NCBI GenBank assembly: GCA_907165135.1
Contig: OU015568.1
Span: forward strand, 14,589,979-14,653,978
DNA from: Oikopleura dioica
Lineage: Eukaryota; Animalia; Chordata
Direction of reading: 5' to 3'
DNA length: 64,000 nt
The translations under genes and the position numbers were made by a program. Within the stretch, counting starts at the first letter, position 1. Each line of letters starts with the position of its first letter. The notes under the pieces were generated by a model. That model saw only the letters and a program-made list of their open reading frames with translations. It searched no databases and was not told the DNA's origin. Shown here in pieces: positions 4,681 through 64,000 of this stretch.

Positions 4681-5092
4681 TTTATCAACAATTCTTTCTT
4701 GGAATTATAAAAGTGTCAGTCGATCCTTGACGCGCCCATATGAAAAATTACACGCAAAAATCGAAGCCTAATGATTTTTTTTCTTATTTCACTCGTTTAT
4801 GATGCGAAAAACAACTCAACCTACTGTTCTCTGTTTTCAACAAATTCTGTACTATCAATTATCAATTGTGCCTTTTTACCTAGATTTTAAACCCAACCTG
4901 CTTCCGAAAATGTTCCTTTGCCTAACAAACACTGCTTCAGTTCTTCGAAAACTACTGTTACTCTTGTCTACTGTTTCTGAATCCAACTTTCTACTGTACT
5001 TCTTTCTTTAAAACCCCCTTTCATTCATAATTCTATTTAACCTCAAGTTCAGCAAAGGGGGCAGAAATCACTTAATTTATTTTTTAAAAGGA

Positions 5093-8000
5093 ATGAGTTT
5101 GACGCTAATTCGCTGCAGTAGGCGATTAATTGTTTCCCGTGGGATGAAAATATACACAAAAACCGGTGACAAAGGTTTGTGACAGCTTCGAGATTTGAAT
5201 TGCTTTCTAAGCGAATTTTTCAAGGAACGACATCTTTGTACACTGGTGAAAGACGCCCTAAGGAACAGTTCTCAAATCGGCCTCCCCGGGCTGGTTTCGG
5301 CAACCTGCGTGGAAACCTGAGTCAGGATATTAAATTTGTCTTTTTATCAAAGATCCTTCGGGACCCTCACTCAGATTTCTGCAGGTTGTCGAGCCCAGTC
5401 AGGGGCGGGGACGCTCGTCTAAATTACCAAAGATTTTTGGTAATGCATTACCAAAAATTGGTAATCCATTACCAAACTTTTTTCATAAGTTCTGATTTTT
5501 TGTCCAAAAAATGAGTAAATCACTCCCAAACGTTTTCTATCACACAGGCGCGGAGCGCACAAGGGCTCTTTGACTAAACAAAATTGGCACTTTTCGGGAA
5601 GTTTGGTAATGCATTACCAAAAATTGGTAATGGATTACCAAAATTGGTAATGCATTACCAATTGGTAATTTAGACGAGCGTTTCCCGTCAGGGGAGTGCA
5701 TCTAGTATTTTGAATTATATACTTTTATCCCTTTTTAAAACTGCAGAACAGACGGATCTCGTCTTTGACGCCTTGGGAGCGACAGATGAGCTTTCGGCTG
5801 CACTTGGAGTCGCTCGGGAATTCGCGTACGATCGCCAAATGCAAAATGTTATTACAATAGGTAAAGCCACAATAATCCTCGCTTGATACTGGTTATTACC
5901 TGATTAAAGTTGCTCATTTATTATTTTTCAGTTGGCGACCTTCAAAGTCGGCTTCAAGAAGTTGGATCGGCCATTGCGACGCCTATTTCGTCAGGTTTGT
6001 ATTGGACTCGCCTTGACCTGGCTTTAATTTTTGGATGATCAAATCCAAATCGAGCTGAACCCTTTTCTTAGCCTCGGAAATGAAGCTCAAGCGCGTGAGC
6101 TTCGACGAATCAGGAACGGCTCAATCAGATTTGATACTGAACATCCAGCGGAGTAGGATCAGAGAATAAGCCCGGGAAAAGAAGTAAAGAAGCTTGAAGA
6201 TCTAATCGACGAACTTGACGCCCAACTGCCACAGCTTACGACTTTTATTCTTCCCGGAGGAGGAATGCGGCTTTTGAATCAAACCCGATTTTTAAAAGAT
6301 TTAGGAGAGAGCGTGAATTTTTCATGTTTCAGTTTTTAAAGGCAATAGGTACTAGCTACTTCATGGATGATTCAAACGCCGTGTCAGGAAAGTGCGCTGC
6401 GCATTTGCACATGGCAAGAACTATCTGTCGAAGGGCTGAAAGAATGTCTCTGCCGTTGGCAGATAGTGGCGAGTTGGATAGGTACCTGGGTTTCAGAAAA
6501 AACGGCACTATGTTTAAGTGAGCTCCTAAAATGAAGATTTTCTTCTATGTATTCAGTGAAATCAAAGAGGAAATCTTTTTAAATTTTGATCCAAGTTTGA
6601 CTAATTAAATTTCAAAATTGAACGTAACCGGTAACCACTGAAGTTTTATCGGCAATGGCAAAAAATTTGGTAATTGAATTTTTAAAGAACCTCTTCGAAA
6701 TTGACTCTTTTTTTGTGATGTCACATGTCGAGGTGCGGCTTATACATTTTCTCTGCTGCTCGGCGGCTCTTGAATATTCATAGCGTTATTACTCGGCATC
6801 TAATAATTCAGCAAGCTTGAATTCTTCGACGCTTATTGGATAATCATGCATTTGCAGGCATCGAGCAGAAAAGGATTTTTGACAAAAACTAATTAATTAT
6901 TAACGTTCTAATGCATTTCACCGAGCTACAGCTATCTGCATTCTACCAGCAGAGCTCGCGAGTTACAAAACACCTTTTGTCTGCCAAGAAATATCGCTAA
7001 AATGTCCGCCGCCACACAAGGTCAGTTGAAGGAATCGAATTGATTTTTGCCAATTTACTATTTTTCACTTCATTTTTTTTCTTTTTCAAACATGCCAAAA
7101 CCAGAGATGATCAGAAGATTCTCTAAGGGCATCATCAAAATATTTTCGCCAACAAACTCCCTTGGTAAATAAAAACTCATCTTATTTTTATTTTCCTAAT
7201 AGGAAAATTTGTCGTTAAAACTTATAGATAGCAATAAAGTAGGATTATTTCCTATTCAAGATTCACTTTTTACGAAAAATCTGAGAGAAAACTTTGAAAA
7301 TTTTCATATTCTTCTTGATGATTTTATTCACGAAGATGCATTTTAAGAGAGGTATGAGACTTCTATGAATTGTATTTTTGCGGAGCCACAAAAGATAGTC
7401 AATCTGCCTGCTTTTATATACACCTTTTGGACCCCGACAAGTTGAACTTGTCAAGTTGGGCGACCATTAGAGGATTTATTTACGACTATTGTGCATCCAT
7501 GTTTATATTTCCTATATAACTGCATTCAGCCGCTTTTTGCCATCTAGCGAGCCGGCAACTTAGCCTCCAATAGTCACTTTTAGGAATCGCTTTTTCAGTC
7601 ATCTACTTTTTATTTTTTCTTGAAAGAGGGAAAGTTGAAAGATGTTTTTTTCAGCGGCCAGTTTAGGTTAGTTTTTAATTATTTATATACTTGTCACTTG
7701 ATGGAGGCTTTTGGTCACTATTGGAAGTGAACTTAGTGTAGGCCAAGTGTCATTTTGTCAATATTTGATGAGATTGGTGAGTTTGTTCCTTGCATTTGCA
7801 TTAAGCAAAAGCATATGTTTGCTGGGTATAATCTGGGGCGTTAATGTTTGTTTGAAATGAAAAAATGGGTGTATTTGAATATCTACTTTCCGGAGCGTTA
7901 TTCCCGCTTTTTTATAATTTTAATTATTCGAACTTCCCTGATTTACTGGCAAAAATCGTCATTAAACTTGGCAGGGTCTATAGCTCCTATATTAATAATG

Positions 8001-11000
8001 GTATGCTATCGTAAATATTGACAGATCGGATTCCTATCCGGATTTTTATCTCTTCTCTAATTCATCATTTCGGCTCTTATATTCCAATTTTTTGAGAAAG
8101 AAAACGTACTGAGTTCCCAAAATGGGACTCTGTGGCTGTTGCTCCAGTCGAAAAATCCATGGTATGAACTTTTTCTCATAGTTTTTTAGCAACTGAGAAA
8201 AGCATTATTAATTCGGGGAGTGAAAGAAGATTTTGGCATTTTTTCCACTCGAGGACTGATCAATCAATTATCGAATGATTTAGTCCAGGTTCTTTTATTG
8301 ATAGCAAATAGCAGAATTAATTTGTAACTGGCTGAAAAGTCTCGCTCAGACTGTAAAAAGGATGGATGAGATTGATTTGAGATGAGATTTTTGTACAGGA
8401 TGATTCAGTGTTTCCGGGCGAAAGGTACTGTAATTACTACTTTAAAAACGCTTGTTTAAAAAGAGTCAGAGAAAGTTTTTGATCAGCTGTCATTTTTGCT
8501 TCCTTTCGAAAGTATTCATAAAAGAACGAGAGACGGGGTCACTATGCGGTAATAATTCAAAACGTCACGGGCGGGAAAAGGCGCTTGATCTCACCTGCTC
8601 ATTAGTTAAATTTATTAGACATGTTGGTGCAAACGCTTTAATCAAGCTTTTCCTTCGGATTACTCTCTTTTTCGGCTCTGCATAGAGACTTGAGAGGATT
8701 AGACGAAAACTAATTTTCGCCAGAGATAGCTTCTCAGATCAACGAGGATAGCGAGAGATCTAAAGCTGTCTGCGAGATTTTTTTTAATTTAAAAATTTTA
8801 AGAGAAGGGTAAAGCAATATAAAGGGGCCTCAAGCCTTAGATGATTTAATAGATATTCATTAGATAGTATTTAAAAGGGCTTCTTCCTTCGTTCTCTCAC
8901 TTCCCAAAAGAAGTGCATTGTAGCCGAAGTATGAACCAGGGGAGATCCGCAGGAAGTTCCAGGATGAACGAGACCCCCTGTATATATCGGGATCCCCACA
9001 AAATTCAGAGCATTTTTATAGTTTTCTGAGTTTTCTGAAACCCGTTGAATAGAAACGTATGCCGCTATCTTAATCGCCTGTCAGATTTATTGTTCCAGCT
9101 CGCCCGTAGCGCCCAACCAGGGATGTACATTCGCAGCGCAAAATCCGCAAAACAGCGCAAAATGCGGGATTTTTCATTCTGCAGCGCAAAACAGCGCAAA
9201 ATCAGCCCCAAAAATTTCCGCAATTTTTCCGCAAAATTGCGCGCAAAAGCGCATTTTGCGCGAAAATTGCACAAAATCTCAATAAATTTGCAGTCCGCAA
9301 AATGCAATTTTGCGGGATTTTGCGTAGAATTTCTACATTTTTTTGATGTTCATTGTGAAGATTTCCGAATCAAATCCTCATTCATCATCGCATTCACAAC
9401 TTCGGCGGTAATTTGCGGAAGAAAAACTAAATAATCATCCGACATAAAACCGTCCGATATCGTAGTTAACCAACCGGTCATTTTTCGGGCCGTTTCAGCC
9501 CCGTTCCTTGATTTCTAAATTTAAGGGGCTTGACGGCCCTTCGGGCCGTTTCAGCCCCGTTCCTTGATTTCTAAATTTAAGGGGCTTGACGGCCCTTCGG
9601 GCCGTTTCAGCCCCGTTCCTTGATTTCTAAATTTAAGGGGCTTGACGGCCCTTCGGGCCGTTTCAGCCCCGTTCCTTGATTTCTAAATTTAAGGGCTTGA
9701 CGGCCCTTCGGGCCGTTTCAGCCCCGTTCCTTGATTTCTAAATTTAAGGGGCTTGACGGCCCTTCGGGCCGTTTCAGCCCCGTTCCTTGATTTCTAAATT
9801 TAAGGGGCTTGACGGCCCTTCGGGCCGTATCAGCCCCGTTCCTTGATTTCTAAATTTAAGGGGCTTGACGGCCCTTCGGGCCGTTTCAGCCCCGTTCCTT
9901 GATTTCTAAATTTAAGGGGCTTGACGGCCCTTCGGGCCGTTTCAGCCCCGTTCCTTGATTTCTAAATTTAAGGGCTTGACGGCCCTTCGGGCCGTTTCAG
10001 CCCCGTTCCTTGATTTCTAAATTTAAGGGGCTTGACGGCCCTTCGGGCCGTTTCAGCCCCGTTCCTTGATTTCTAAATTTAAGGGGCTTGACGGCCCTTC
10101 GGGCCGTTTCAGCCCCGTTCCTTGATTTCTAAATTTAAGGGGCTTGACGGCCCTTCGGGCCGTTTCAGCCCCGTTCCTTGATTTCTAAATTTAAGGGGCT
10201 TGACGGCCCTTCGGGCCGTTTCAGCCCCGTTCCTTGATTTCTAAATTTAAGGGGCTTGACGGCCCTTCGGGCCGTTTCAGCCCCGTTCCTTGATTTCTAA
10301 ATTTAAGGGGCTTGACGGCCCTTCGGGCCGTTTCAGCCCCGTTCCTTGATTTCTAAATTTAAGGGGCTTGACGGCCCTTCGGGCCGTTTCAGCCCCGTTC
10401 CTTGATTTCTAAATTTAAGGGGCTTGACGGCCCTTCGGGCCGTTTCAGCCCCGTTCCTTGATTTCTAAATTTAAGGGGCTTGACGGCCCTTCGGGCCGTT
10501 TCAGCCCCGTTCCTTGATTTCTAAATTTAAGGGGCTTGACGGCCCTTCGGGCCGTTTCAGCCCCGTTCCTTGATTTCTAAATTTAAGGGGCTTGACGGCC
10601 CTTCGGGCCGTTTCAGCCCCGTTCCTTGATTTCTAAATTTAAGGGCTTGACGGCCCTTCGGGCCGTTTCAGCCCCGTTCCTTGATTTCTAAATTTAAGGG
10701 GCTTGACGGCCCTTCGGGCCGTTTCAGCCCCGTTCCTTGATTTCTAAATTTAAGGGGCTTGACGGCCCTTCGGGCCGTTTCAGCCCCGTTCCTTGATTTC
10801 TAAATTTAAGGGGCTTGACGGCCCTTCGGGCCGTTTCAGCCCCGTTCCTTGATTTCTAAATTTAAGGGGCTTGACGGCCCTTCGGGCCGTTTCAGCCCCG
10901 TTCCTTGATTTCTAAATTTAAGGGGCTTGACAAAGGCTTGGAACTCTGAGTTGATAAATCTCAGTTCTGTCCCCAACCCCACCCACACCCATCATTTAAA

Positions 11001-11501
11001 AAATCTATATTATCATTGTTTTTTGCTTAATTATGGTTATTTTTGAAAACCTTGAAAATAACTTATTATAACTTCGGAATAATGTCCCCAAAATTTTATC
11101 TCTCCATTTTAAGTAGAAATAAATGGGGCCAAAAATACCACAAAATTCGCAGATTTTCGCAAAATGCGCGAAAATCCCGCAAAATATGCAAATTTTCGCA
11201 AAATCCGCGAAAATCCCGCAAAATCGCAAAATTACGCAAATTGCGTGTCATCTGCGCAATCCGCAATTCCGCAAAAGCGCGAAATCCGCAAAATTTTCGC
11301 AAAATCAACAAATTTTGATTTTCCGCAAAACAGCGCAAAATTCCGCAAATTGCGCGATTTTTGGATTTCGCAGCGCAAAACAGCGCAAAATGGACCCCAA
11401 AAATTTCCGCAATCGCAGCGCAGCGCAAAGCAAAAATTTGTGCGAATGTACATCCCTGCGCCCAACAACAAGAAGGCAAAACCGATCAGTTCAAATCGTG
11501 A
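5093..11501 (+). CDS. MMAB: Cob(I)alamin adenosyltransferase (MMAB/PduO type) with a mitochondrial presequence; last exon interrupted by a hAT-type element
   Basis: MSLTLIRCSRRLIVSRG (Arg-rich, no acidic residues), then MKIYTKTGDKG, TSLYTGERRPK, VFDALGATDELS, LQEVGSAIATP, LPQLTTFILPGGGK, AHLHMARTICRRAER, RYLNRLSDLLFQLAR. The empty-site C-terminus SAQQQEGKTDQFKS* ends at TGA 11499-11501. Confidence 0.93.
5406..5686. mobile_element. MITE/foldback-like element in MMAB intron 2
   Basis: 20-bp perfect TIR ACGCTCGTCTAAATTACCAA (5411-5430) / TTGGTAATTTAGACGAGCGT (5662-5681). Flanking direct repeat GTCAGGGG at 5398-5405 and 5687-5694. Five internal GGTAAT(G/C)(C/G)ATTACC palindromes. Confidence 0.8.
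9118..11458. mobile_element. Non-autonomous hAT-type DNA transposon (2341 bp) inserted in the last MMAB coding exon
   Basis: 18-bp perfect TIR CAGGGATGTACATTCGCA / TGCGAATGTACATCCCTG. 8-bp TSD CGCCCAAC at 9110-9117 and 11459-11466. Dense subterminal CGCAAAA repeats. No intact transposase ORF seen. Confidence 0.92.
9487..10931. repeat. 56-bp tandem satellite, about 26 near-identical units, inside the hAT element
   Basis: Unit GGGCCGTTTCAGCCCCGTTCCTTGATTTCTAAATTTAAGGGGCTTGACGGCCCTTC. Period 56 checked at 9487, 9543, 9599 and 9655. A few units lack one G; one has GTATC. Confidence 0.97.
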
Positions 11502-12120
11502 ATCTTTACCTAAAATTATCCAACAGTTCATTCTTGACATCCCAATGGTTCTGACAAACTTGTCGAAATACGGTTATTAAACTTTCAAGCTTTCACTTAC
11601 CGCTTGATTTACTGACCATAGTGCTTACGTAGAGAGGCATGTAATCGCCGAATATACAGTGTCGTCAGCTTTTTCTGACGTAGAATCTATAATGCGCCAC
11701 TTAGCTGTTTCTACAATTCGATTGTCTTCGCCATTAAGAATTCTATAATTACATTACTTCTTTGAAACCAAATGAATTTTACCCCTTGTTTAAAAATGAG
11801 AGGAATAAATTTTTACGGGGCCCTTGAAATTATTTCATAATGTACATTTTTCTAGTGACACCCTTATACTAGTAAGATTAAACTAAGGGAGACTTCGAAC
11901 CATTTTCAAGTTCTTCTCAATTCTTAGAATCAATTTTTATCGAAAATGGTAGATGCGTAAAAAATGAAGAGTTAGTTGACTTTGTCATAAAATCATTCTC
12001 TTGCAGAAGTGAGTTAGCCTCTTCTTTTCATTTGTTGAAGAAGAAGCAAAGGTCAGGTGGAAAGGGCGAGACTAATCCGGAGCGTGTTTAGATGGAGTAA
12101 GTGATCCAAGCGACTCTAAC

Positions 12121-15474
<3,354 letters not shown>

Positions 15475-16202
15475 TCATTTAGTTTTTTCAATTTTTCCAT
15501 AATTGATTCACTTTTAATTTGATTCCAAATCCCAAATGCACTCAACGACGAAGAAAACACAGTGTGAACACAACAAGAAACGCGATCCGCAAGAAATTAT
15601 CAAAAACAAAGATGATCCGCACTCATTGCTTAATTAAGGCAAATTAACCATGATTGACCTCCTATGTGCATAACGATATTCGTGTGTTATTCCTGAAAGC
15701 ACAACTTTGCATTTCCTGATTTTATTCTTTCATTTTCATTATATAATTTAAATTATGCAATTTCAGTATTTTTGTTTTGCTGTATATTCTCATCTATGAT
15801 TTCTCCTTCCCTCATTAATGTTCCCTTATAAATTTTCATATATTTAAACTGGGAATGAGTAACTAAAGCAAAACGCCTGTATATGAGCACAAGATGAACC
15901 CCTTTTTATACGAAAAACTTTCCGGATACGACCTTAATTTTGATAATTATTAATTATTGCAAGAGTCATCAAAGTTCAATTCAACCCCTATCACTCAAAA
16001 ACAAAGACCAAACTCGCTACTCTTATCCAGTCAAAATACGAATCTTCAAACAAACAAAAACACTACTGATCTTTACCACTCTAACTCTAAATCTCAGCTC
16101 CTTAAACGTTCATTGTACTGTACTATTTTGTTGTCCGAGTCATTCCTTCAATTTTATTACTTTTCATTCTCATGCAGCGCTTTCTCCTGAAGCCAATAAA
16201 AT

Positions 16203-19200
16203 TTACAAAAATTCACGTTTCTTTTTCACTTGTTTCGTTTTTCGGCGAGGGATCAATGATTTCGCCGTCGATTTTTCGTTGTTGGGTAAAGTTGGTAATT
16301 GGGTAGTGAGGGTCAACGGTGATATTGAGGTAGAAAGTGTTGAATTGTTTTGAGAGAACTTTGTATGTTAAGTCCTTAATTGTAAAGTTAGGTTTCTAGT
16401 CTACTCCTGGTACTTACAGAGAGTCCATCATGATGTTGACGTTTTCCAGCATACTGTAGTAATGAATTTCTCAGAGGATTTTTCTCATTGCCTTCGTCCT
16501 CTCCATGCTTGATCATTCTATATTTTGAGATTTCATCAAACGGTCTGATGATAGTATATCCTTCCCCTTTCAGCCTAACTTGCAAGTCGTCGTCTTCTCC
16601 TCCCCAACCCCAGTATTCGTTGCTGTATCCGTTTAGTTTTTCGAATGTTTCTTTTGTAAAACTCACTAAAAGTAAGATTCCGCTTTTGTAAAGATTTTAA
16701 CGAGGTACCTATTCCTCCAAAGACATTTTGATAGAGCGGCTTGTAGTTCCAAATGTCAATGTGCGCGGCGTAGTGGCGAGGATAGCGGGAGCAGAGATAG
16801 AGATTCCGATCGTCTTCCATCACGAGATCGACGTCGTGGAAAAAGAAGCAATCAAAGCCGTCGTTGACTGCTTCTTTGAAACCGATATTGAGGAGTTTTC
16901 CCCGATTGAAGGGTCGAAATCTTCCACCTTATTCTGGGTGATCTTTTCTGCGTATAAAAATGTTTTTCATAAAAGAGCACCGTTCCTTGATTAATGATAT
17001 AAAATCGAAAATGAATATTCTGCCGTATAAGCGCTGGTATCATATAAAGAAGGAGCCATTTTAAATGTTTCGTCCTTTCGTTCGTTTTCGAGTTATCTCT
17101 GAATGGGACAGGGCGGTCTAATTTGCATTCTTGTAAATAATCTCGAAAATTTGCGAGATTAATCTTCTTTGGAAAAAGATTCTGAGATTAGTCAAGACTG
17201 GACTAGTTTCGAGATTAATCTTTTTAGCGAGGGTCGCGTGGCTCGGGGGAAAAATTTGGGTGGCGCTGGCGAGCTGTGAGCAGTGCGAGGCGGCGCGGAC
17301 AAAATTTCAAGCTGCGCTACAAGCATGTTTGAGTTTCATTTTTCTCTCGCGCCGTCGGCCATTGGTCCACCAATCACAGCGCGCGTTTCAAGATTATTTG
17401 AAATAATCTCGATACTATTTCGAAAATTTCCCGAATTAATCTTTTTTATTCAAACAGACTAATCTCGCGTCGAGATTAATCTTATAAGAATAAATGAATA
17501 GTCTTCGGAAAAAAGACTATTTACAAGAATGCAAATTAGACCGCCCTGGAATGGGATGATAATGGCCACATGCTTGTTTTTTGGGACCAAACATCGTTCT
17601 TTCGGAAAATAGCTCGAACTGATGAATTTTGAAGAATATTCGTTCGTGAAGTTTTTGAAGCTTTCTTCCAGCAAATATGTCGGAAATTGCACATCGAAGC
17701 GACCTTTTTTCAAGTCATAAAATTTTCAGATTGGGATGGGAGTCGAAGGACTCTTGTGGTATGTGAAGCAAAATGCGGAGGAATTTTGCACGCGCGCTCG
17801 TCTGAACAATTATTTACCGAGCAAAAGAGGGCCGGACGGAAAAGTGAGAGTCGTTGTTGATGGCAACAATTTTGCGTATGAGGTTTTGCGGCAATCCAGA
17901 GCTCCAGGTACCGCTTGGGCTTTTGTTATTTAAAATCAATTTGAATAAGCCTGCTTTGGAAGTGAACCGGCTGTTTATGAACACATAATTCATCACAGAT
18001 TCCTCAAATATCACCTAAAATGTTGCGACGAGATCATTTTCGTGATGGGCTATTCGAGTGCTCCAGGTAGCGATTGCTGGACAAAGAAAAGGGCGAATGA
18101 GCACGAAAGCGCTATGAAATTTTTCGAACGACTTCGTAATGGAGAACTTCCTCATAGTCAGGGAAATATTGGAAATGATGGTCACAGGAGATACGATAAC
18201 TTGAAGGTGTCCCCGCCGTGGATTGTTCATCAAATCATGGAAATAGTTGAGAAGGACCCAAGAGTGCAGGTTTATCAAGCTGAGTGTGACAAAGACTTTG
18301 CGATCATGGATTTGGCAGTGGATCTTGGGTGTCCGATTATGAGCAATGACTCGGATTTTCTACTTTTTGCGGCGCAGGAAATGGTTTTTTTCGCAACTAA
18401 AGCAAATAAAATTTCCGATTTCTCGCTTCTGATTGGCAATTAGCGCCCTATCATAGGGCCCCTATGAGAATTTTAAAAACCTTATCAGCCCGTTATCAAA
18501 ATGGGCGATTGGCGAGGAGCAGCTGACATTATCAGCGATTATTGGTACAGTTCACAAGATGTCAAGCTTCAGTTCTATCACCTGCCTCTTGTATCGGTTC
18601 TTTGCTTCAACAGAGAATGTGAAATCACAGAAGAAGAGCTTAGACCCTTCTGGTACGCGTTGATCGGAAAAGCGGAATTTGAGCATTCGAAGAAACCGAA
18701 TGTAATTCCCGAGGTGATCAGATGGATTGTCCAGACTTTTGAAGAAGAAGGAAAGTTAAAAAAATATTTTAATAATCTTTGTAAACAAAAGATTTTTCAA
18801 CTAAAACAGATTTTATGAGCTCGATCGAAGAAATCTGTGAAATACTCGACGAAATGGCGCTGATGTCAGATGAGTTGAAAAACCACGATGGAGCGTATTT
18901 TGGAGCGAATAAAGGCCGGGAATCAAGGAAGAGAAGACTCGTCAGAAGCCTCCAGCGATTCATGGTTACCGGAAAGACCTATCCTTGGGAAAACGATGAG
19001 TATTTCAAATTGATGCAAAAAAGCACGCGTGTCGTCACTGATGGCCATCCACTTCTGCGCGCTGCGAGAGATACAGAAGCTTTTTCGATACTGCCGAGTA
19101 AGGTGAAAGAAGTTCTGTCTGCGAATCGACAAAAAATGCTCTGCTCCTCACTGCCTGCTCCAATTTTTACAGAGCCGATCTTCCAACTCTACAATTCTTG

Positions 19201-63431: not shown

Positions 63432-63930
63432 NNNNNNNNNNNNNNNNNNNNNNNNNNNNNNNNNNNNNNNNNNNNNNNNNNNNNNNNNNNNNNNNNNNNN
63501 NNNNNNNNNNNNNNNNNNNNNNNNNNNNNNNNNNNNNNNNNNNNNNNNNNNNNNNNNNNNNNNNNNNNNNNNNNNNNNNNNNNNNNNNNNNNNNNNNNNN
63601 NNNNNNNNNNNNNNNNNNNNNNNNNNNNNNNNNNNNNNNNNNNNNNNNNNNNNNNNNNNNNNNNNNNNNNNNNNNNNNNNNNNNNNNNNNNNNNNNNNNN
63701 NNNNNNNNNNNNNNNNNNNNNNNNNNNNNNNNNNNNNNNNNNNNNNNNNNNNNNNNNNNNNNNNNNNNNNNNNNNNNNNNNNNNNNNNNNNNNNNNNNNN
63801 NNNNNNNNNNNNNNNNNNNNNNNNNNNNNNNNNNNNNNNNNNNNNNNNNNNNNNNNNNNNNNNNNNNNNNNNNNNNNNNNNNNNNNNNNNNNNNNNNNNN
63901 NNNNNNNNNNNNNNNNNNNNNNNNNNNNNN
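63432..63930. other. Assembly gap
   Basis: Run of N. Confidence 0.99.
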
Positions 63931-64000
63931 NTCAGTTACGTATTGCTGCCATCAGATTGTGTTTGTTAGTCGCTTTTTTGGAATTTTTTGGAATTTTTTT

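Follow-up and report, generated by a model that had tools for sequence, protein, structure and literature searches.

Two mobile elements of the hAT type, designated E1 and E2, lie within coding exons of a 64,000-nucleotide stretch of the Oikopleura dioica genome (contig OU015568.1, positions 14,589,979 to 14,653,978, referred to throughout as the window). E1 is inserted in the gene MMAB and E2 in a beta-1,4-galactosyltransferase-like gene (B4GALT). The question raised by this locus is whether such elements are removed from the transcript as introns. A first-pass annotation of the window had proposed that hAT ends reading CAGG act as pre-adapted generators of introns in a genome that tolerates GA, GC and GG splice donors. 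The reading that we favour, with somewhat more confidence than doubt, is that E1 and E2 are independent, recent and unrelated hAT insertion alleles in coding exons of an Okinawa-lineage reference, and not established introns. Their exonic position would be due largely to the compactness of the locus, over half of which is coding, and to their youth, selection having had too little time to remove them.

E1 is bounded by a perfect 18-nt pair of terminal inverted repeats (TIRs; CAGGGATGTACATTCGCA, at 9118-9135 and 11441-11458). Its interior is occupied by a tandem array in which a 56-bp unit is repeated 26 times (9484-10931), and its two terminal 330-nt regions hold 23 copies of the motif CGCAAAA, compared with 13 in the remaining 61 kb of the window. 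E2 is a much shorter miniature inverted-repeat transposable element (MITE). Its 35-nt TIR, which starts CAGGGCGGTCTAATTTGC, matches at 97% and is perfect for 31 nt from the tip, and the motif GAGATTAATC occurs three times in E2 and nowhere else in the window. Each element is flanked by a perfect duplication of its target site (TSD), 8 bp long. A scan of the window for 8-bp direct repeats together with a 12-nt TIR gave a 12/12 TIR only for E1, for E2 and, at its inverted ends, for a Penelope-like element, while a shuffled-sequence control gave about one weak 9/12 match. The TIRs of E1 and E2 have only their first five bases, CAGGG, in common. The 8-bp TSD, the Ac-like start of the TIR and the short subterminal repeats, which are of the transposase-binding type, fit an assignment of both to the non-autonomous elements of the hAT superfamily, in which Ac/Ds has a TIR starting C/TAGGGATGAAA and an 8-bp TSD (PMC3260210). 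Neither a further copy of E1 or E2 nor an autonomous hAT copy was found within the window, although no search was aimed at the cognate transposase, and exact-pattern scans of metagenomes gave no match to the TIR of E2 or to the left end of E1. The claim that two unrelated elements with CAGGG starts and 8-bp TSDs sit in coding exons is borne out, since the TIR/TSD scan, the Pfam matches and the readings of the empty sites described below all agree.

The two Bergen haplotypes, represented by OdB3 scaffolds FN653099.1 (L004) and FN654307.1 (L003), are collinear with positions 64-22975 of the window and served as comparison loci. At the MMAB site, the frame upstream of E1 encodes 21 residues that match positions 153-170 of the 171-position Pfam profile Cob_adeno_trans with E 3.4e-05, a score that clears the curated cut-off, and that also match human MMAB in PDB (2idx). 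The upstream exons of MMAB lie at 5079-6481; a Pfam scan of 7700-9050 for such exons was blank. E1 is inserted 35 nt before the end of the coding sequence. When E1 and one copy of its TSD are taken out the exon reads ...LARSAQQQEGKTDQFKS-stop, and this tail is shared, except at the last residue (A for S), by eight MMAB proteins that belong to the O. dioica cluster. The MMAB protein of the window falls in the same 90% cluster as CBY11907.1 of O. dioica, and the tail motif (Q..EG..DQFK) is kept also in more distant larvacean-like proteins. Unless the element is removed, the last 11 residues of MMAB would be replaced, as the exon reads on into E1 in an open reading frame (ORF; 9045-9434) with 108 junk codons. 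A protein search with the exon read into E1 returned one E1-family ORF (P0001) and the MMAB cluster. Among public gene models and transcripts no MMAB relative was found that ends in ...SAQPEGK, as from a spliced transcript, or in ...SAQPGMYIRS, as from read-through; all have the empty-site tail.

At the second site E2 splits a Glyco_transf_7N domain. The downstream piece corresponds to positions 57-87 of the profile (E 6e-07), and matches to Glyco_transf_7N and 7C are found in other exons of the gene. The break falls within ...KNKHVAIIIPF|RDNSK..., the conserved IIPFR motif of beta-1,4-galactosyltransferase, and the empty-site reading ...KNKHVAIIIPFRDNSK... (...HVAIIIPFRD...) is the Bergen sequence, so that the motif is identical in both lineages. 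A protein search with the exon read into E2 gave no candidates. The part of the exon upstream of E2 (17549-17713) contains no ATG here, the start Met of the Bergen model having been replaced, and the true 5' exon or trans-splice site of B4GALT is therefore elsewhere.

These positions bear on the idea that both insertions are tolerated without any splicing. E1 would then alter only a non-catalytic C-terminal tail of MMAB, with a read-through of 108 codons, while the gene hit by E2 would be paralogous or dispensable, and neither would need rescue. E1 does lie after position 170 of the Cob_adeno_trans profile and the read-through ORF is present, and divergent loose ends of RNA reads on the WGWGGEDDD exon suggest that related galactosyltransferase genes exist. 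However, the MMAB tail has been kept among larvacean relatives and the motif split by E2 has not changed between the Okinawa and Bergen lineages. We regard tolerance of this kind as an improbable account of the two insertions.

Evidence that E1 and E2 are insertion alleles comes from genomes and transcripts in which the sites are empty. Neither Bergen haplotype carries an element at either site. An MMAB mRNA contig from a Tara metatranscriptome (L002) aligns to 9051-9115 and then passes straight into 11458-11713 with E1 absent, and this mRNA and the eight cluster proteins have an uninterrupted ...SAQQQEGKTDQFKA. E1 is absent too from a second MMAB mRNA (L005), which was set against the Bergen genome. 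For E2, two DNA samples of the same lineage as the window (X1 and X2, as Logan contigs) were available; many of their pieces are at least 99% alike to the window, and one or other of the samples may be the reference individual itself. In each of them a contig joins 17100 to 17549 and lacks the 448 nt between, 8 letters at the joint being ambiguous; this corresponds to the empty allele of E2. The depth at this joint was 92 in X1 and 39 in X2 against about 132 and about 41 in the flanks. As the empty allele is present in both samples, E2 is not fixed but polymorphic in its lineage. Other same-lineage contigs stop exactly at the E2 boundary (17108), as is expected of a bubble formed by filled and empty alleles. 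The age of the insertions can be argued from their structure: the perfect TSDs and the perfect or near-perfect TIRs suggest that both are recent. It had been supposed that splicing would shelter such elements from selection. No shelter is visible for E2, and an empty allele in X1 and X2, empty sites in Bergen and mRNAs uninterrupted at E1 all speak against the supposition.

Misassembly of repeats into exons could in principle produce a similar picture. The E2 family reaches about 10-18 times single-copy depth in the same-lineage DNA, and E1 carries its long tandem array. Yet the perfect 8-bp TSDs are single copies at the empty sites of independent genomes, and the same-lineage contigs end at the precise boundary of E2; an artefact is extremely improbable.

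Whether the exonic position of the two elements reflects an enrichment in exons can be judged from the coding density. It is about 57%, based on seven complete genes of the collinear Bergen locus, where the order EP400-like, rhophilin-like, MMAB, PKC, B4GALT, a 570-aa gene and an ABC transporter is common to Bergen and the window. At this density the probability that two insertions out of two fall in coding sequence by chance is about 0.3, and their position therefore amounts to no enrichment.

Introns of the G*-AG type were reportedly described in O. dioica by Denoeud in 2010. Six non-canonical introns, five in the window and one at the Bergen locus, were verified by mRNA alignment, RNA joints or frame continuity. 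In all six the exon ends in AG and the intron begins with G, as the first-pass annotation had stated, and every one reads AG|GAA or AG|GC. The same context is already in the literature, where the GA donor of O. dioica GA-AG introns is flanked by AG upstream and A downstream (PMC7072748) and where non-canonical introns, which have A, C or G after AG|G, make up 11-12% of the total (PMC8008620; PMC7072748). That CAG|G resembles a donor reflects the generic donor consensus from -3 to +1 and is no evidence of pre-adaptation. If a CAGGG tip were cut behind its CAG, the intron would be expected to start with GG, and this is seen in none of the six. Donor tolerance is confirmed in respect of GA and GC, by comparison of mRNA with genome and by RNA joints, but not in respect of GG. 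Remnants of TIRs and TSDs had also been anticipated at non-canonical introns; CAGGG or CCCTG ends and flanking 8-bp repeats are absent from all six.

Comparison with Bergen further separates these introns from the two elements. At one and the same site PKC intron 1 has a GC donor and 421 nt in the window but AG|GAATGA, a GA donor, and 55 nt in Bergen, and MMAB intron 7 has GT here against GC in Bergen. Both are old introns and not recent hAT products, and both illustrate that the +2 position of the donor drifts between lineages at a single intron. Established G*-AG introns such as PKC intron 1 and MMAB intron 5 are common to the window and Bergen, whereas E1 and E2 are insertion alleles absent there. 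The dinucleotide pattern is available at E1 and E2, but their positions are not kept between lineages, the Bergen sites being empty.

Removal of the elements was considered by enumerating donors that start with G and pairing them with AG acceptors near the junctions. In-frame pairs number 6/30 for E1 and 7/28 for E2 where chance would give one in three. An in-phase AG near the distal end had been put forward as the requisite for splicing; with an in-frame share not above chance, the presence of such an AG is no evidence that splicing occurs. The further stipulation that an insertion be in sense orientation is empty, since the TIRs are symmetric and give CAGGG on both strands, which makes orientation irrelevant to the donor. 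In E2 the use of CAG|GG with the strong first acceptor TTCAG| (CCCTGTCCCATTCAG|) would cause a frameshift. In-frame routes would run from CA|GG, from CAGG|GC or GCG|GT with the second AG, or to an AG inside the 3' TIR, and those that end at an AG of the flank would alter the conserved R of IIPFR. The RNA ends of E2 are moreover predicted to form a 28-bp helix that starts exactly at CAGGG, the whole element folding at -164 kcal/mol (z -10.3), and in this model every candidate donor is base-paired within the helix. Burial of a donor in a helix should hinder recognition of the 5' splice site rather than help it. The notion of the CAG|G tip as a ready-made donor is borne out as far as the reading of the termini and the possible in-frame removal of E1 are concerned, and is not supported at E2, given the frameshift and the predicted burial. 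With IIPFR broken and a frameshift from the best acceptor, the E2-bearing copy is therefore most likely a null or weak allele that exists beside an intact one.

Several observations weigh against the reading of E1 and E2 as insertions that are probably not spliced efficiently. At the left tip of E1 the sequence CAG|GGATGT would, as a hypothetical donor, match GTATGT except at +2. Joined to the first downstream AG (AACAAG|, ending at 11472), a GG-AG splice of this kind could remove 2352 nt in frame and give back the MMAB tail minus one residue (QQ to P). The mismatch at +2 is tolerated by the O. dioica spliceosome. The RNA runs (X17 and X18, with reads placed on 11751-17750) derive from another lineage that is 90-95% like the window, so efficient splicing of either element in its own lineage may still take place; these runs have zero depth on 17151-17750 and hence no read at the E2 junctions. 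A contig from an ENA metagenome (L001) carries at 227-505 a copy of the E1 family 85% identical to 9118-9406, directly following a 65-codon ORF whose homologues are kinase-domain proteins, and is suggestive of a second insertion of this family in coding sequence, albeit a single case. Finally, MMAB intron 6 suggests that insertions resembling transposable elements can become GA-AG introns here.

This 125-nt GA-AG intron is absent from both Bergen haplotypes, in which the exon is continuous. Inside it a terminal inverted repeat with 13/15 matches extends from +5 to -7, and a direct repeat on either side of the intron, AGGAA, supplies AG|GAA at both junctions. It looks like a candidate transposon-derived intron of the Okinawa lineage with introner-type geometry, gain in this lineage and loss in Bergen both being possible. 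Because its repeat is of 5 bp and its arms are not CAGGG, it is not hAT-like. Among 18 introns, terminal stems above those of shuffled sequences were found only at MMAB introns 6, which is non-canonical, and 7, which is canonical; in this small set terminal inverted repeats are not enriched in non-canonical introns.

Taken at their strongest these points would describe an introner-like system, in which exonic hAT and MITE copies are routinely removed by a relaxed U2 spliceosome that uses G-N donors at or close to the tip of the TIR together with whichever AG of the TSD or flank is the first to be usable, and in which E1 and E2 would be newborn introns able to drift to fixation. The putative in-frame removal of E1, the demonstrable splicing of GA and GC donors in the species and the lineage-specific MMAB intron 6, with a direct repeat supplying both its splice sites, are consistent with it, and precedents are found in the MITE introns of Fritillaria borealis and in introners (PMC11282704) and in the inclusion of Oikopleura among intron gains by transposon insertion (PMC3443670). 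On the other side, the other-lineage RNA contains zero junction reads, and within its own lineage E2 has a common empty allele. E2 would also need an unusual donor (CA|GG, CAGG|GC or GCG|GT), two of these three would skip the strong CAG acceptor, each would alter the invariant R of IIPFR, and the donors are predicted to lie inside the 28-bp helix. None of the verified non-canonical introns has a hAT signature. On balance such a system is possible but doubtful. A related view, that intron birth is under way in O. dioica, with insertions of hAT elements or other MITEs removed soon after insertion by a donor-tolerant U2 spliceosome, E1 a newborn G*-AG intron and MMAB intron 6 an older product, also seems to us unlikely.

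One close parallel is the Ac/Ds family of maize, which resembles E1 and E2 in its 8-bp TSD and in a TIR beginning C/TAGGGATG, E1 sharing CAGGGATG with Ac (PMC3260210). Maize Ds and Ds1 have splice donor and acceptor sites near their termini and are spliced from exons (PMC5395267), and de novo intron creation by Ds has been listed under the mechanism of transposon insertion, with Oikopleura among the gains so explained (PMC3443670, Table 1). In maize, however, splicing was demonstrated by transcripts, whereas removal of E1 and E2 is a matter of arithmetic, with GG or GC donors and no acceptor supplied by the element. The introners of Micromonas, Aureococcus, dinoflagellates and others are non-autonomous DNA transposons with TIRs and TSDs that carry one splice site of their own and co-opt the other from the TSD (PMC11282704). 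Although E1 and E2 are likewise TIR- and TSD-bearing non-autonomous elements inside genes, introner families, described for many protists, have hundreds to thousands of spliced copies that sit at intron positions; E1 and E2 are known as insertions only, and the TSD and flank of E2 offer no scar-free or favoured in-frame splice. A broad survey of introners mentions neither tunicates nor hAT elements (PMC9860276). Lineage-specific non-canonical introns have been described in another larvacean, Fritillaria borealis (Henriet et al. 2019, reviewed in PMC11282704); they derive from MITEs, bear TIRs and TSDs and are removed by a U2 spliceosome accepting non-GT donors. These are mostly AG-AC or AG-AT introns, fixed and numerous, in contrast to the G*-AG introns of O. 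dioica, of which those verified in the window have no hAT-type ends. No description of hAT-derived introns in O. dioica was found in the literature searched. The interpretation offered by the first-pass annotation can be seen as a reasonable, unproven instance of a known idea; the mechanism specific to CAGG is not supported by the tests made here.

If exonic copies do prove to be spliced, the segregation of filled and empty alleles in a culturable chordate would make it possible to watch the birth of an intron, and would connect the unusual G*-AG introns of the species, and the rapid turnover of its introns, with the activity of transposons, as has been proposed for Fritillaria. As tested, nothing sets E1 and E2 apart from ordinary insertion alleles of young age in a genome dense with genes, and the argument from the CAGG terminus goes no further than the generic consensus for donors. 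The analysis yields a precise pair of loci, MMAB/E1 and B4GALT/E2, together with one candidate completed case, MMAB intron 6. Coordinates are collected in Table 1.

Table 1. Elements, host exons and verified non-canonical introns, with positions in the window
Feature	Position	Strand	Description and evidence
MMAB last coding exon, part upstream of E1	9053-9117	+	ends ...NVCRYLNRLSDLLFQLARSAQ; Pfam, PDB, mRNA L002
E1 TSD, left copy	9110-9117	+	CGCCCAAC; identical to 11459-11466; single copy at the Bergen empty site
E1	9118-11458		2341-bp non-autonomous hAT-type element; 18-nt TIRs, CGCAAAA-rich subterminal regions, tandem array
Hypothetical E1 donor	9118-9126	+	CAG|GGATGT; sequence reading; GTATGT match except +2
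E1 TSD, right copy	11459-11466	+	CGCCCAAC; identical to left copy
MMAB last coding exon, part downstream of E1	11467-11501	+	QQEGKTDQFKS, stop; mRNA L002; tail kept in relatives
B4GALT-like exon split by E2	16986-17713 (coding 17549-17713, 16986-17100, one TSD copy)	-	Pfam Glyco_transf_7N
E2 TSD, one copy	17101-17108	-	+ strand reading GAATGGGA; perfect 8-bp duplication
E2	17109-17548		440-bp hAT-type MITE, 35-nt TIR
E2 TSD, second copy	17549-17556	-	GAATGGGA; perfect 8-bp duplication
MMAB intron 2	5263-5751	+	GA-AG, TAAG|GAACAG; spliced alignment of mRNA L002
MMAB intron 5	6114-6181	+	GA-AG, TCAG|GAACGG; mRNA L002; GA-AG also in Bergen (L005 against L004)
MMAB intron 6	6263-6387	+	GA-AG, GAG|GAATGC; mRNA L002
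PKC intron 1	12278-12698	+	GC-AG, ACAG|GCGCGG; RNA joint in 14 + 8 reads
B4GALT intron	16928-16985	-	GA-AG, CAAG|GAACGG...AATAAG|; frame continuity between Pfam-matching exons; GA donor in Bergen too
Bergen MMAB intron 7	Bergen locus		AG|GCAC; mRNA L005 against Bergen genome

A number of further features were observed in the window, which contains a 500-N assembly gap at 63432-63931. In PKC intron 1 the same-lineage DNA has an allele without 12352-12610. The intron also contains a 52-nt hairpin (12556-12607, arms AGTCAGGGTCCT) that, as loose ends in X1 and X2 suggest, is repeated elsewhere in the genome. Loose ends of RNA reads right before 12090 consist of the O. dioica spliced leader, and the PKC mRNA is therefore trans-spliced at 12089-12090. 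Several MMAB proteins from metatranscriptomes start with the translated spliced leader, MGTHPIFESDFDCLT.

MMAB intron 7 (6482-9052, 2.57 kb, GT-AG) is closed by a stem of 13-14 bp (GGGTTTCAGAAAA/TTTTCTGAAACCC). This stem is kept in Bergen, where a C-to-T change leaves a G.U pairing and the donor is GC. Conservation is 82-84% in two blocks of the intron (8221-8427 and 8545-8745), an unusually high level for intronic sequence.

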